From Paraphysomonas bandaiensis (lineage: Eukaryota > Protista > Chrysophyceae): a stretch of DNA of 42,302 bases. The stretch is from NCBI GenBank assembly GCA_965644295.1, contig CBFFRP010000104.1:1-42302 (forward strand). The letters are read 5' to 3'. Below the pieces are notes generated by a model. It ran no database searches and was not told the origin of the DNA. It saw only the letters and a program-made list of their open reading frames with translations. Shown here in pieces: positions 22,451 through 30,344 of this stretch (within the stretch, counting starts at the first letter, position 1; the number at the start of each line of letters is the position of its first letter). A program made the position numbers and the translations under genes.

Positions 22451-23780
22451 CGCCCCCTCAATGAAATAATCAGTAAACCGTAGGTAATAAAGGGGATATG
22501 AAACTTATACACACTGAGAGTAAAAACCAGAGCAGCAGTCACTAGTCAATAATAAGCGAACTGCAGAGATGCTGTATTGTGAGTCCATCATCATGTATTG
22601 AAAAAAATGTAAGAACTCCGTGTAACTCAAACTAGCCACCTAGATCGCTTGTGGCTTGGTAATTGTAATTTGGGTGTCTCTAAGGTTGTTGATCGCTTTC
22701 TGTTGTTGCTGGATGGGATGTCGAACCCAGCTCCCCCCATCAATGTAGTTCGCAATGTGAGGAAGTTAGTTACTCTTAGTGATTTCGCAAGAAGATCGGC
22801 TAACATTGACTTGGTGGGTAAATGATCAACAGTCAATAGGTTCTCGGCAATATGTTCTCGAATGAAGTGCTATCGAATCGCGATATGTTTTGTGCGTCGA
22901 TGATGAGTAGGATTGTAACATAATTAGACTGCACCTTTATTATCGCACCAAATAGTTGTTGAGAATGGAAGTTTGAAACCAATTTCTGATAATAAAGAGC
23001 GTAGCCATAATGCTTCCTGAGTTGCTGACGATAAAGCCATATATTCAGCTTCAGTAGATGACAATGTCACTGTTGTCTGTAATCGAGATTGCCATGATAT
23101 AAAACAATTACCTATGAAGAATGCAAAAGCTGAAGTGGACCGTCGAGTGAGGTGACATCGCGCCCAATCGCTATCGCAGTATCCTGACAATGTTATGTGG
23201 GATCCAGAATATATCAATCCTTCCTTGTTTTTAGCAGTGCCAGAAAACCTGGCAAGAGTATTGACTGCGTAGGCGATGTCCGGTCGAGTACATACAGCGA
23301 AATACATCAGGGATCCAATGAGCTCCTTCTATGGAAAGTTTTGAACATATCATTGATTTGAGTCCGAAAAATGATTGAATTCATGTAAATCATAATTTGA
23401 ACAACATTGGTGTAGACATTGGTTTATACAGTTAGGCACATTGAATTTGCCTACTATTTTGGTGACATATTGTTCCTGACTTTTAGAGTCGTGATATTTT
23501 TATCGAAGTCTTGGTGAATGGGAATACCTAAGCAATAATAATCTAAGAGTCCGAGATCCGTAATTTCGAACTTTTTGGGTAGAAGTGATCTTTGAATTGT
23601 TGGATATCAGTGTCAGATGCAGATGCAGTGATGATATCGTCAATATACATAGAAATTAGCATAATCCTGCCATTGATCTGTGTTTTAAATATACATGGAT
23701 CAGATATTAGTCTGGTGAAACCCATGTCTAACATGAAAATAGTACAACACTTGTACCAATTTAAACCTGCTTGTTTCAAA
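22451..23780 (-). mobile_element. Decayed Ty1/copia LTR retrotransposon, 3' part (RT + RNase H, PPT)
   Basis: KQAGLNW...DPCIF...MYIDDI; YFAVCTRPDIAYAV; GYCDSDWA..RRSTS; ISWQSRLQTTVTLSSTEAEYMA; CDNKGA; TKHIAIR; MLADLLAK, with stops and frameshifts. PPT gagggggcg at 22451-22459 followed by tattag (possible mutated LTR start). Confidence 0.93.
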
Positions 23781-23799: not shown

Positions 23800-23918
23800 G
23801 TTTCACTAGTTAGTAAATGGTAGATGCTTATCTAGCTATTAGACTATTTTGTTCATTTATCTACTAAACTGATACTGACTCTTGAACGCCTACTGCTATA
23901 AATAGACATTCACGACTA
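23800..23918 (+). repeat. Interspersed repeat family, partial copy D, abutting the truncation point of the copia element
   Basis: ctaaactgatactgactcttgaacgcctactgctataaatagacattcacgac resembles ctaaattagttctgactcttaaacgcctactatagctaataatcaggcattcacgac (30815-30871). Confidence 0.7.
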
Positions 23919-24036
23919 TGTATGTGCATTATTTAAGCTTGCTTGGGCAAGAAACTAAAATTAAGTTTTTTTCAAGCTTGTTTACTTTTCAGTATGTGGT
24001 TTAAAAGTTCTATTCTTACGTTATTGCTTTGATGAA

Positions 24037-24190
24037 GTTACAGGATGGTTTCAGACTTATTGAGACAGTCGTCATTACAACCCTTGTAACAGGAAGACAA
24101 TGGACAATCAGCGCTGTGTCTACTTCGGTTTGTATGCCGATAATTATCACACGATGGTTTCAGACTATTAAGACAGTCGTCATTACATCG
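24037..24190 (-). promoter_or_regulatory. Two tandem SECIS-like kink-turn hairpins in the ArsM 3' UTR (24152-24190 and 24037-24090)
   Basis: Sense strand: cgatgt-aATGAc-GACT-gtcttAAt-AGTC-tGAa-accatcg and gttacaagggttgt-aATGAc-GACT-gtctcAAta-AGTC-tGAa-accatcctgtaac. AUGA/GA core, lower helix and AA in the loop are present in both, but the upper helix is only 4 bp. Confidence 0.55.
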
Positions 24191-24227
24191 CTTGAAACAG
24201 TATGGCAACGAATAGTCAGCGCTATAT

Positions 24228-25322
24228 CTACTTCGGCTTGTAAGCCGATAAATTAGCACTAGCTACATAATCTTCTGCATTACTTCCGGGAAGCCATTGT
24301 TTAATGACCTCCCGTGATTGTTCTTTAACATCGATATCAATATTAACGAAACCTGCCTCAGTTAGGTATCGCCGGAGTGCAGATCCATCCGGCGCACCTG
24401 AAACTCAGCACGCTAGGGCTTGTGCTGTACGCAGCGACTCCGGTAAAATCATATTCTCCCGCTTGATAACATCGCATATCGCCAGCCTTCCACCAGGACG
24501 TAAAACTCGAAACATATCCCGAAATACCTGCTGCTTGTCAGGAGAGAGGTTTATGACACAGTTCGAGATAACTACATCAGCCGAGTTGTCCGCCAAAGGC
24601 AAATATTCAATCTCTCCAAGGCGAAATGAAACATTCGTATGATTGTTTTCCTTTGCATTTTGACGGGCTTTGTACACCATCTCTGGTGTCATGTCTATGC
24701 CAATAACTCTGCCTGTCGATCCAACTTTGGTGCCAGCAAGAAAGCAATCTATTCCAGCTCCACTGCCAAGGTCAACAACCGTCTCGCCCTCTTTCAAATC
24801 CGCAAATAAAAGCGGATTTCCACACCCTAACCCTAGATTAGCAGTTTCGACAGTCTTTAGGTCCTCCGCGGAGTAACCATTTAGGGTACTGTCAACACTG
24901 ACACAGCACGACGCCGTACCCTGCAGAGTGGATGCATAGGACGACGAGACTAGCTTGTAGACATCATCATCAGGAACTTCTTGGCAACATGATGGAAGGG
25001 GTGGACTTTTCAGCATTGCATGTATACTATCTATCGAAGCATTCTCTGGGGACAACGACGATATCAGTCGCCCTCCAGCTCCATAAATGCGAACAGTGGG
25101 TATATCATGTAAGCCTAGCGATAGCGCCAGCTCGTCCATGCCATCTTCATCGACTGGAATAGCCACTATCCGTACATTATCATCGAAAGATGCACTCATC
25201 ACATCTGACAGCAGCTGTTTGGACTTTTTCTTCCAAGTTGCAGTGGTGAAGACAATTGTGGTCTCGGGACCATGAATGGCCTCACTGACAGATTCAGCAT
25301 TTATTTCAGCAATAAGCGCCAT
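24228..25322 (-). CDS. arsM: Arsenite S-adenosylmethionine methyltransferase with N-terminal thioredoxin-like domain; in-frame TGA (24405-24407) probably selenocysteine; intronless, 364 aa
   Basis: SCC; NLGLGCGNP; [15 protein letters not shown]; [10 protein letters not shown]; [16 protein letters not shown]; [12 protein letters not shown]; then ALAC-[TGA]-VSGA...[49 protein letters not shown] (24228-24230). Confidence 0.9.
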
Positions 25323-27943
25323 ACTACGATATGAACAGTAAGTCTGTGTCAGGTCTTGTGAGTGTTATGCTCTGGGTCGAGTGAGTGCATTGATTGTGTA
25401 TATACAAGTGCAGTGCTCTACTGCTGATGGTGATTTTTCTGTATGGAATTTCGTGCTTACACTATCTCCTTGATTCTGATTGGCTGAAGTTTAGAATTCT
25501 CAAAGTGAAGTGAAGTGATGCTGGTCAAAATCAGGTGTATGAGTTCCAGTGAGTGGATGATATGTATGACTATCCAGCTATGAGGAATAGATTATACACA
25601 GTAAAACAGAATACAGCCGGTTCAAAGTCTCGTTGATGACACCTGGAAGCCCTTGGATGCAGTCAAATCATCGGGTTTATTCCAGAAAGAATGTGGAGAG
25701 CTGATGCGCCAAATCTGATTTGAATGAGTAGGCTTGATATGTAAATCAGCCATTTTTCCCATAATGAAGGTGAAGCATGGTGGACCTTCCTGGAAGGAGT
25801 TTCGGGATCTCTCGGGAGGTTGACCTCAGTCCTGTGTAGCTATACAATGAAACTGCTACTTGAAATAAAGATGCATTACGATTCTCAAGGCTACTATTAA
25901 GTTGCTAAGTAGAGACCACACTGGCGTTAAAAGTATACTATGTTTTCAACAAAGCTGTCGATTTCTCCTTCTATTGATTCCGAACGTTCCTCAGCGTAAA
26001 AAATGATTGTCAATTTCGGCCTCGGCTGCACAGTTATACTTCAGCGGCAAAAGACGTTGGAGTGAATTGGTTTTTATGGACATCTATAGTTAATTACTGT
26101 TACTCTTAACGAAAGATAAACGATTCCCAGACTGTAGCATGCGACCACGACCTACGGTCTGCATTGTCTCTTAAATGATTACAATCACGATAAATTAGAG
26201 AGAAAAAGCTAATACATCCTTATGACACAGTCATGTATAATGGTCGATATCACACTATCAAATATGTTACCACTACTTTCCAGGAGCTCGTGTTTATGAA
26301 CATACGGGCTCTCCATTCCATCTGTGTGTCTCGAGAATAATGGATGCATGTAACTGCTAAGTCACCGCCTGGACAACAATTTTTTAAAATATTAACTTTC
26401 CTTAACGGAACTATGGCTTTTCACGGTACCGTAGTATTTTGTAGGTAGTATGGAGTAGCTTTGTGTTGCGGCTTTCATGCTGTCGGTTAGGCTTTTCGTT
26501 ATCTTGTGAAGGCCGATGATGTAAAATGGACTATATTAGTGGGGATATTGATGGCGGACTTATTTTTGACAGCACCATGTTACGAGTAATAACTAATTGA
26601 TTAAGAAGACTGAAAAATGTCAGGGCCGGGTATCCCGCAACGACACCACTGGTTTACTCAGACTTATGGCGTCTAAACTCTAAACAGTGACTTCGTGGAC
26701 CACTATGTGGCTGTAAGCAGCAAGTTGATATAAACTAAACTCAGTTTATTGAACATTCTCCATCAGTTATAGGCACATATTATATCGCTACTAAGTTATG
26801 TTTTGTATATTAGTATATTGTATAGTGCCCTGCGACAGCTTTCGTGTTTTGATAGATGGTGCAAATGTTTTATTTCGCACATTAATATATAACCAGTGCA
26901 TAGTAAGTCTGTAAAAGAAATCATTGTTGTCACCGTCACACTTTCCCTGTTGAGTAAAACTCCTAATAGAATTTATTAACTTAAACCTACAGTCCAGATC
27001 TTCTTAGCTCCTTGGTGACCACTTACATATTCACAAACGGACGGATGCAAGATATATGCAAGACAAATAAAATAGTCATAGGAGGTGTAATTGAAACCGT
27101 ATAGTATATAAAATAGGGTATATTTTAACTGTCTACAGTAATTTCTTTGGTTCCGTGATCTGTACATGGGGGCCCTTACATATCAAGAAGCATTGTGATG
27201 GGTATTGAGAGCCATCTACCCACAACAACACTAAAATACGTTAGTGATAATGTGTCTAATGGCTGTGACGATAAGAGCATATGCTATCGTGTGGTTCCTT
27301 TAGAAAGTGTGGTATATTTGCAACCTTTAGAAATTTCCAAAATCAATGACATAAAATACTAGTTGGCTGTCAATCTAATCGAGATGAGGACAGGCATACG
27401 CCGATAATTCAGGGAGTGAGTGGAACCCTTTTCAATGGTCTCATGACGCAATGACATCCCGTTGAAGCATTACTAAAACCAACCAGGAAGTCATTAGTCA
27501 CTCACGTATGCCCTATCATATGCATACAAATGCTTTGAAGTGGTGTGTGTCTTTCGTGTTGTCTGATTGTTCCATGTGTTGATGCGTTAATGTTCATGTG
27601 AGGATGTGGTATGATGGACCTGTAGATCATGTCTACTTCTAGACTTGCTACTGTCCGCTGTAGCATGCGGCATGGTGGAGATGGCTGCATGTGATGTACG
27701 ACTCACGAAGACAGCAGGGTGTATACGTCCCGTATATTATGCCGTATGCCACCGTATTTTTGAGCTCACAACAAACAGCAAAATAATGAAATTCAAAATC
27801 CCATCTATACAATACACACACACACACAGAGTGGAGGATAGCAACACACACACCTGCCACGCCACCGTTACCTCTCTTCACGACTCAAAACACCTCTCAG
27901 TCCTCAAGTGCAAGGGCTTGACAGCAGTGTCAGTGGAGTGAAT

Positions 27944-29733
27944 ATGAATAAGATCACCTCCTATATGTCTGAGTACCTGCCACAGCACCCCTCTGAGTGT
28001 GAGTACTGCATGTATACACAGCATGACTGTGATGTCGCAGAGAAGAAAATAGACTAACTTTTATATTATCAGCTCAAAAGATCCGAAAAGAGGCCGAAGA
28101 AGAGATGAAACGCGTAGCGCAGTATGCAAAGCTGGAAAAGAGTGTTTTCTTGAGCAGAATGCAAGACTCTACTAACAAGTATATAACACGTATGTATATG
28201 GTATACTATCAGCTAATATTTTACATAGAATACTTGGAATTCCAACCTCCTTAGAGAAAAAAGAAATCAATCGTCGTCAGGAGCTCTTACGACGGAAGGA
28301 GAGAGAATTGAAGAATAACATCGCTGCTGATTTGCGCGTTCCCTCATCAACATCACTGGATAAACTACGACGTCTAAGGTCAGAATTATCCAGCTCAAGT
28401 AAGCACGAGACTTGTTCATTCTCGTTCCGTCGAGAAGATGATTCCGCCATTGGCCGACGGACTCTTTCCACTGCAGAGGCATACCATTGCCAGCCTCCAC
28501 CTTCCGAACGCAGTACACATAGTCAACCTGTGCATACCGATGATAGCGTTTTATACAGCCCCCGTCCGAGTGTACACAGCGATCATCAGGTACATAGTAC
28601 AGCTGCTTTTGCAAGCAGTCCTCAAGCATGTACCCGTTTGCCTAGTCGTCTAGTTGTGAGCGATGACTGTGCGACCACCCACACATTATCATATCCCTTG
28701 TCTTCACCGAAACCAATTCCTGTATGTCACTCTGTGCTGAGTCCTTCTCCAACTTCGAATCGTGCAAGCAGTCCCTCATCCCCGTGCCACACCCGCGATG
28801 ATAAGAGCTTTACATCCGACGTAGAGAGTCTGCTATCTGCATCTCCACGGGAATCTGTGGAGAGCATTGACCATTTAGTGACCAGGAATAATGTGATGTC
28901 AATGTCATGCACTTCGGAGGATACCTCACAGGGTCGAAAGGACCAGATGACGAATGACGCGCCGAGCCGTGCTGATTTTTCTGTACAATGCGACCTGGTA
29001 GATGCTACAAATTCTGACCAGCAAGATAAACCGTGCAAATCACCTGCAAATAGTAACGATGGTACGTCTGTAGCACCTAGTATCGAGGAATATGAATCCA
29101 AAAGCGAATACAATGATCTTGAAGATGAAACCAAGCCTGCTACTGAACTAAAGGAAGGGGTGGAGTTGCTTGCAAAGAATTCCAGTGAACCTGCCTGCTC
29201 CAAGCAAGAGTATGATCCATGGCGTAGTGATCAATGTGAGCGTGGTCATGGAGTGAAGGTTAGTTCCAGTGACCGATCCAGATGGCTACGTCCTCTTCTT
29301 CACTGCAGCACAGACCGTGAAGAATGCTTCTCAGACTGTAGCGAGAAGCACGGATTGGTGCAACACAATGACTCTCATGTTGGATGCAGGAACAGGAGCC
29401 GCCTTCAATCCCAAAATCGTAGTCATCTCCCAAGTGCATTTGGTTCCCTCGACAGGGAAAGTGATAGTGCATTTAGTGGCCGTATGAGCATCGATATCCC
29501 ATCCGCTTCAGTGGTCATTGATTCTGCCTCCCGTCGGCCACCCCGCCTTGCCACTGATAGAGTTCATAGACCTACTTCGAAGTATGTAACGACACGATAT
29601 CATGCCGCGTATGAGGAGCCACGCATATCTCTTGACCTTTCAGGGCTTACGTTCGAGGTAATATATATCTGCTTATCGATGACACTCGCTCATGGCATTT
29701 GTATAGCACATAAGAGAACTGACAGCCTCGTGA
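27944..29733 (+). CDS. Hypothetical protein: charged helical N-terminus plus long Ser/Pro-rich disordered region, 4 exons
   Basis: ATG 27944. Two short introns lead in frame into ORF 28308-29783. A final intron after LTFE gives HIRELTAS-TGA (29731-29733). Confidence 0.7.
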
Positions 29734-30344
29734 TCGATGAGATAGTTGCATTGTGTCAAACATTTAATGTGCTGGCTATCTGATTGGGTGTGTGGTGTTA
29801 AATGTAATTTTGGTGTTGCCGTTCGTTAAGTAATACTATATATACTATAGAATTGATCACCATATTTAGTCTCAGCCGTTTCTGCTGTTGAAATACAAAT
29901 AGATATTCTGTATTTATAGCAGGGCTGCTTAACCTTTATTTTTCAATAAGTTGAAATTATAATTGACTACAACGTCCGTCAATTAATTGGCAATTAATCG
30001 TTACGCAATGATACGCAGCCCTGATTTATAGCAATTATGTACCAAGAAAATAGACAAGCGCTTCCTCCTTCCTCTAACTAGTACGACATTGTAGTAGTGC
30101 TATCTAGTATAATACCCTTGAAAACATCTGAAAGTTGGGTGGCGGAGACGTGAATAGTCCAACAATATCTCTCAGTTTGGCAGCTTTGGGGAGGTCAAAT
30201 AGGGTGGAGTAACCCAGGGTGATTAGTATCCGTTGTCTCGGAGAATGTTGAGTTTAATGAGATTGAATGTCGGATGCTTTTCATCAATATGGGTGATCTA
30301 CCCTCATAAAAGTTGGACTCGCACGTTTTCGTGGTGTTCTGTGG

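Follow-up and report, generated by a model that had tools for sequence, protein, structure and literature searches.

Tandemly duplicated, putative miniature SECIS hairpins in the 3' UTR of a methyltransferase selenoprotein mRNA

The 3' UTR of a selenoprotein mRNA encoded on the minus strand of the window (the whole stretch of DNA that was analysed, 42,302 nucleotides) carries two tandemly duplicated hairpins. Both have a helix I, an AUGA/GA kink-turn core, an upper helix of 4-6 bp and a small loop bearing AA. With a probability of roughly 0.7, judged from the sequence, we take them to be working SECIS elements with a short upper helix, which became compact in this lineage. Upper helices as short as these are described for no SECIS in the open-access papers and preprints that we searched, with subscription journals mostly outside the search; where the literature searched speaks of a 'minimal SECIS', it means a full-size hairpin excised from its UTR.

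The selenoprotein gene and its mRNA

The host gene (25322..24228, minus strand) encodes a thioredoxin-like N-terminus and an arsenite-methyltransferase-like SAM methyltransferase. The piece upstream of the Sec codon matched Pfam Methyltransf_31 (7e-36), arsenite methyltransferases in the PDB (5e-26) and the NCBIfam arsenite methyltransferase model NF008823 (253.9 bits, where the cut-off of 263 is meant for the whole protein). Its relatives come, by their source names, from diatoms and other stramenopiles (Attheya, Thalassiosira, Amphora and Triparma). All 28 aligned homologs end at the identical ..ALAC, the effect that an in-frame UGA shared by them has on gene calls. Readthrough of the TGA adds 58 codons (VSGAP...AYKPK), and the identity of this tail to those of six homologs (60-67%) is higher than the identity over the whole protein (51-58%). 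In one homolog, L138, a Cys occupies the Sec position (..ALACC-VSGAP), and the predicted Sec of the host aligned to it is a classical Sec/Cys pair. As predicted from these alignments, the host is a real selenoprotein gene. It belongs to the selenoprotein MT subgroup of the ArsM/AS3MT family, since ArsM fold models were matched and U aligns with C near the C-terminus. The SAM-dependent methyltransferase (MT) is a listed selenoprotein family in diatoms and Ostreococcus (Lobanov 2007, PMC2375036; Jiang 2020, PMC7539508), and the host gene is a member of it, with an arsenite-methyltransferase-like domain and Sec near the C-terminus.

The mRNA was covered by transcript contigs from four samples (L026-L029), which run from 25385 or 25367 to 23997-24027 with no intron and with 100% identity to the genome. 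Contigs of runs X3, X5 and X8, from three other studies, end at 23999-24007. The 23 T found past position 23997 on the plus strand represent the A-tail of the minus-strand mRNA. With this poly(A) site and the stop codon at 24228-24230, the 3' UTR is 231 nt long (24227..23997) and encloses both hairpins. The initial annotation had named polyadenylation upstream of the hairpins as an objection to its proposal. This objection can be set aside, since the A-tail begins at 23997 and the RNA contigs of four studies end at 23997-24027. When words were sampled from 23800-24700, their share was 0.77-0.78 in the RNA libraries and 1.00 in the DNA runs; the RNA share matches the transcribed part, 23997-24700. 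Since the RNA contigs from several samples are 100% identical to the genome, the duplication is real and no artefact of the assembly.

Two further observations concern this region. Over 722 nt, an RNA contig from a 2024 run, labelled as another organism, shows a single difference, A>T at window position 24088, which belongs to the outer flank of the distal hairpin. About 220 nt past the poly(A) site begins a degenerate fragment of a Ty1/Copia-type retrotransposon (22500-23780, minus strand). Its ORFs are broken, one of them matches RVT_2 (PF07727, 1.3e-8), and its 5' part is missing.

Table 1. Features of the mRNA in the window and miniature hairpins at other selenoprotein genes of the genome
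Feature	Position	Strand	Basis or description
Poly(A) site, mRNA 3' end	23997..23997	-	Contig end in run X1, followed by 23 T on the plus strand
Intronless selenoprotein mRNA	23997..25385	-	Transcript contigs L026-L029, 100% identical, colinear
Selenoprotein CDS before Sec, 305 codons, ends ..ALAC	24408..25322	-	ORF list, Pfam, NCBIfam, PDB, 28 homologs
In-frame TGA as predicted Sec, motif C-U-VSGAP	24405..24407	-	Frame continues here and in six homologs; Cys in L138
CDS after Sec codon, 58 codons, then TAG 24228-24230	24231..24404	-	60-67% identity to six homolog tails
Tandem duplication, 108-nt unit	24040..24259	.	Tandem Repeats Finder, pairwise alignment, 100% identity in RNA contigs of four samples
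Proximal miniature SECIS-like kink-turn hairpin	24146..24197	-	Sequence and folds; AUGA 24183-24180, GA 24161-24160
Distal miniature SECIS-like kink-turn hairpin	24037..24089	-	Sequence and folds; AUGA 24075-24072, GA 24052-24051
SelM-like L116, miniature	C167:71554-71574	sense	AUGA-C-GUUC-UGAAU-GAAC-U-GA, helix I -17.8 kcal/mol
GPx L015, miniature	C41:267309-267331	sense	AUGA-C-GACU-UUUGAAU-AGUU-U-GA, helix I -15.0 kcal/mol
GPx L018, first hairpin	C335:93732-93759	-	6-bp helix, 8-nt loop, helix I -17.0 kcal/mol
GPx L018, second hairpin	C335:93606-93638	-	120 nt further on; 5-bp helix, 15-nt loop
GPx L016, miniature	C288:513679-513706	-	4 bp, helix I -19.6 kcal/mol
GILT L125, miniature	C234:123852-123878	sense	7 bp, helix I -12.2 kcal/mol, loop without AA

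Structure and conservation of the two hairpins

Tandem Repeats Finder returned 24040-24259 as a single tandem array with a period of 108, 2.0 copies and 83% matches. Read on the minus strand, the unit spans the end of the coding sequence (ten codons), the stop codon and, with one hairpin in it, about 75 nt of 3' UTR. This agrees with the initial annotation, which had described a duplicated unit of about 108 nt made of the last codons, TAG and 3' UTR; the TAG does lie within the unit, and only its position had to be corrected, to 24228-24230.

The proximal hairpin reads GCGAUG-UA-AUGA-C-GACUGU-CUUA-AUAGUC-U-GA-AAC-CAUCGU, in which an upper helix of 6 bp is possible around a CUUA tetraloop. The distal hairpin has an upper helix of 4 bp (GACU/AGUC) closed by a 9-nt loop, GUCUCAAUA, which contains AA. 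The upper helix of 4 bp that had been proposed for both copies is thus right for the distal one, while the proximal one can form 6 bp. The distance from AUGA to GA is 18-19 nt. Below the core, helix I comprises 6+3 bp in the proximal hairpin, where it is modest (-7.7 kcal/mol), and 10-12 bp in the distal one. UA-AUGA-C and U-GA-AAC are present in both copies and are predicted to form the G.A pairs. In both copies the AA lies 10 nt downstream of AUGA, on the 3' side of the loop, and one of its A is paired in the minimum free energy fold of the proximal hairpin. The exact core, ATGACGACT..AGTCTGA, occurs at two places only in the 62.5-Mb genome (669 contigs), and these are the two hairpins.

The proximal hairpin is located 46 nt past the stop codon and 222 nt past the UGA, close to the 220 nt estimated before. 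The distal one follows 154 nt past the stop codon and 330 nt past the UGA, 40 nt before the poly(A) site. Unconstrained folding returned the expected architecture for both, at -13.7 kcal/mol for the proximal hairpin (z -2.84) and at -9.4 kcal/mol for the distal one (z -0.86), which is thermodynamically unremarkable. The earlier statement that both copies keep the AUGA/GA core and a pairing lower helix is consistent with these folds. Combining the AUGA of copy 1 with the GA of copy 2 into one larger SECIS was rejected by inspection, since only the same 4 pairs are possible.

The copies have diverged outside the hairpin, as had been noticed from the letters. In the pairwise alignment of the units, the core from UGUA-AUGA to ..ACCAUC shows 2 differences in 36 columns, both in the apical loop, compared with 22 differences at 77 positions outside it (Fisher p about 0.01-0.02; p = 0.019 in the conservative version). 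The spacer between stop codon and hairpin has diverged by about 28%. Within helix I, one pair changed in a compensatory manner from C-G to G-C and one became U.U. The few differences in the core against the diverged spacer, together with the compensatory pair, are a modest sign that both hairpins may be under constraint.

The presence of a canonical SECIS elsewhere in the transcript would speak against the two hairpins as the Sec signal. We scanned for AUGA or GUGA cores (later also NUGA and GGGA) with a downstream GA, using constrained folds of the insert and the flanks. No SECIS of normal length was found in the whole mRNA or in the 1.2 kb downstream, relaxed cores included, and the only sites with a proper helix I and helix II in this range were the two hairpins. 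Applied to the GPx genes of this genome and to the orthologs from other species, this scanner had no difficulty in finding SECIS on their 3' side; the negative result is therefore more than insensitivity.

With the Rfam models, nothing on the window reached the gathering score and no match to SECIS_1 (RF00031) appeared at E up to 10, so the expectation that standard searches would miss the element proved correct for this model. In the whole genome, SECIS_1 gave two sub-threshold matches (22.6 and 20.4 bits) at places not linked to a known selenoprotein gene, and its cut-off was reached by none of the SECIS of this genome, the longer ones included. Model-based surveys of the selenoproteome would fail here, and filters of the SECISearch type would under-count selenoproteins in such lineages.

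The hairpins share with eukaryotic SECIS (RF00031; type 1 and type 2) the location in a selenoprotein 3' UTR, helix I, the internal loop and the AUGA/GA quartet. They further share the A before UGA, a non-Watson-Crick pair followed by G-C on the quartet and a distance of more than 200 nt from the UGA codon. They differ in size, since eukaryotic SECIS measure 70-100 nt overall and have an upper helix of about 10-11 pairs (14-15 with the quartet), whereas the hairpins measure about 45 nt and have 4-6 Watson-Crick or wobble pairs. Thus helix 2, with 4-6 pairs above the quartet, falls short of the usual 14-15 bp counted with the quartet. Moreover, the AA that they carry near the apex is partly paired or belongs to the 3' part of a small loop, and Rfam does not detect them. 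In animal SECIS work and in textbooks, helix 2 is treated as having a required, fixed length and the apical AAR a required, fixed place. In human elements, helix 2 counts 14-15 bp when the quartet is included, and it 'ensures a precise distance' to the AAR (PMC2761289).

Miniature and longer SECIS in this genome and in other species

The genome contains the Sec machinery (tRNA-Sec, 69.6 bits; SepSecS, 426 bits), and an in-frame TGA at the active site was found in its GPx, SelM/Sep15, MsrA and GILT genes. Miniatures of the same build lie, by genomic position and on the sense strand, 3' of five other Sec genes, namely one SelM-like, three GPx and one GILT gene (Table 1). The motif that the initial annotation had proposed to look for at other UGA-containing genes thus recurs in this genome. 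The miniatures of the SelM-like and of two GPx genes are some 50-100 nt past the stop codon. In GPx L016, stop codon and miniature may overlap, provided that the final exon continues as an open, hydrophobic extension of the C-terminus; the alternative is an unrecognised intron.

Longer SECIS, with 28-43 nt from AUGA to GA, were found at the GPx genes L012, L014 and L019, at MsrA L123 and at the SelM-like L119, SelT-like L020 and SelU-like L124. The upper helices of these seven have roughly 11-13 bp where the pairing is clear; that of L012 folds weakly (-1.9 kcal/mol). Since the genome also keeps SECIS with upper helices of 11-13 bp, the miniatures stand at the lower extreme of a size range and are one form among others. 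Both groups have in common the core consensus RA-AUGA-C-G...Y-GA. For another MsrA gene with an in-frame TGA (L122, C289:21364-21771, plus strand), the 1.4 kb downstream yielded no SECIS candidate, large or small.

In most miniatures, an AA follows AUGA at 7-10 nt within the 5' strand, which is near the usual linear spacing, and the 3' arm is short. In three SECIS of this genome, L012 (C145), L020 (C395) and L125 (C234), the segment from AUGA to GA lacks AA altogether. From these sequences, the apical AAR seems to be dispensable or replaced in this organism.

Six miniatures were folded freely, and every one adopted the architecture, at z values from -0.7 to -4.4. Pairing was analysed in an alignment of four miniatures, which come from three unrelated genes of one genome. 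Here 86.8% of the cells were paired compared with 68.6% in shuffles, a value reached by none of the 500 shuffles. Two-sided changes were seen in 6 of the 10 pairs, and slid controls fell to 28-60%. A covariance model built from four miniatures was too sequence-specific, giving 57-65 bits for its own seeds and 4-8 bits for other miniatures, and its alignment contained spurious rows.

The orthologs of the host gene have longer elements. From AUGA to GA, the two closest ones (71-75% identical in the domain) have 29 and 35 nt and those of more distant species 40, 60 and about 72 nt, and the upper helices have at least 10 bp. Since the six orthologs among the MT selenoproteins span 29-72 nt compared with 18-19 nt in the host, the compaction to 18-19 nt is, by this comparison, specific to this organism's line, for this gene at least. 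The proposal of a lineage-specific minimal SECIS gains support from both sides, the orthologs with at least 10 bp and the five other genes of the genome with miniatures. Related loci among metagenome contigs were almost only bacterial ArsM genes, which are useless for a comparison of UTRs. For the GPx miniature, a 98%-identical protein is recorded from a transcript, without a contig, and a single related contig was found across species (L142), a Cys form without SECIS. This contig comes from an environmental relative (JGI sample 3300073878) in which the methyltransferase, L138, is also a Cys form without SECIS; this relative is a lineage with Sec replaced by Cys.

Competing explanations and a possible mechanism

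Since the motif is short, we weighed whether an AUGA...GA hairpin could have arisen by chance within a duplicated piece of 3' UTR. The miniature descriptor of our own design (ATGA, 12-25 nt, GA, at least 4 closing pairs and a helix I of -7.5 kcal/mol or lower) does match a few unrelated places. It also matches coding sequence: a site at 28954-28975 on the plus strand (AUGA-C-GCGC..GUGC-U-GA), inside a 491-codon Ser-rich ORF (28308-29783), was taken as chance. However, only 0.3% of 20,000 random 232-nt sequences of like composition hold a match, which is the rate to be expected per UTR. In the 324.6 kb that were scanned (both strands of the window and 35 loci of the genome) there were 13 matches. 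Seven of them fell into the 3' regions of selenoprotein genes, to which about 1% of the scanned sequence belongs. The six others are mostly weaker and without the AUGA-C-G consensus, and one is inside a long ORF. A chance origin is thus very improbable. The hairpins could instead be decayed SECIS, which lost their upper part before the duplication, in a gene that is being lost and whose UGA mostly terminates translation to give a truncated enzyme of 305 residues. This would explain why the upper helix has about half of the length regarded as required in animals (PMC2761289), and why a near-canonical 5' arm with 10 nt from AUGA to AA is combined with a short 3' arm, as after an internal deletion. 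Nevertheless, we regard decay as unlikely. The 58 codons past the UGA are open and 60-67% identical to the homologs, the mRNA is well represented in RNA runs of several studies, and the core was kept in both copies while the spacer diverged by about 28%. Moreover, five more selenoprotein genes would have to be dying likewise.

The remaining alternative concerns the binding partner. The hairpins could be kink-turns for another protein of the L7Ae family (Snu13/15.5K, L30 or L7Ae-like) that controls the stability, localisation or translation of the mRNA, with the Sec signal located elsewhere. Such a site is conceivable because the core resembles box C (AUGACGA) and box D (CUGA), and the sole Rfam match is a weak C/D snoRNA (15.3 bits, E 4.8). 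Snu13 also binds kink-turns with short helices without restriction (PMC1874613). The kink-turns of box C/D and U4 snRNA, bound by Snu13/15.5K/L7Ae, are similarly compact, with short helices around tandem G.A pairs and a box C and D-like sequence. The hairpins differ from them in being part of an mRNA 3' UTR, with no guide region or terminal box arrangement, and in having a larger, two-sided internal loop as in SECIS. They lie specifically 3' of selenoprotein genes, and this tie argues against another L7Ae-family protein as their main role. In addition, their core is common to the longer SECIS of the genome and the mRNA holds no further SECIS candidate. We therefore give this explanation little probability and return to the two hairpins as short-helix SECIS elements.

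SECIS are recognised by an L7Ae-family SECIS-binding protein through helix I, the internal loop and the tandem sheared G.A pairs of AUGA/GA. Above the quartet, both hairpins have a non-Watson-Crick C.U pair followed by G-C and A-U pairs. [quoted passage not shown] All of these published determinants can be read in the core sequence of the hairpins. In the proposed mechanism, SBP2 would bind the kink-turn and bring eEFSec and Sec-tRNA to the ribosome at the UGA, which would be served from 222 nt (proximal) or 330 nt (distal) downstream. The need for a certain length of the upper helix, and probably also for a fixed place of the apical AA, would have been lost in this lineage. A relaxed apical requirement is suggested by the three SECIS of the genome without AA and by the short 3' arms of the miniatures. 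Once it was relaxed, the SECIS of several genes could have shrunk, with the upper helix drifting freely in length down to what SBP2 binding needs.

We think it rather probable, with somewhat less confidence than we have in the two hairpins themselves, that SECIS were reduced in this genome to a kink-turn and a hairpin of 4-7 bp, about 45 nt in all, in 6 of about 14 sampled genes and sometimes in tandem. The spacer of one helical turn and the positioned AAR, both treated as universal in eukaryotes, would then no longer be needed, and no natural eukaryotic SECIS would be smaller than these elements, which standard search tools would not see. Half-length elements that work in a natural lineage would, if true, reveal which parts of a SECIS are truly essential. 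They would also point to an altered interface with SBP2, eEFSec or the ribosome as an object of study, and would offer a very compact SECIS for the engineered expression of selenoproteins.

In the mRNA of selenoprotein P, many UGA codons are combined with two SECIS that are full-size and unlike each other. The host mRNA resembles it in having two SECIS-type hairpins in one 3' UTR, but it has one UGA, and its two copies come from a recent 108-nt duplication that includes the stop codon. This tandem duplication across the stop codon would have placed two hairpins in the mRNA, both of which were retained. That the doubling raises the efficiency of Sec insertion, as the initial annotation suggested, is a speculative idea. 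A second case of doubled elements for one UGA was seen at the GPx gene L018.
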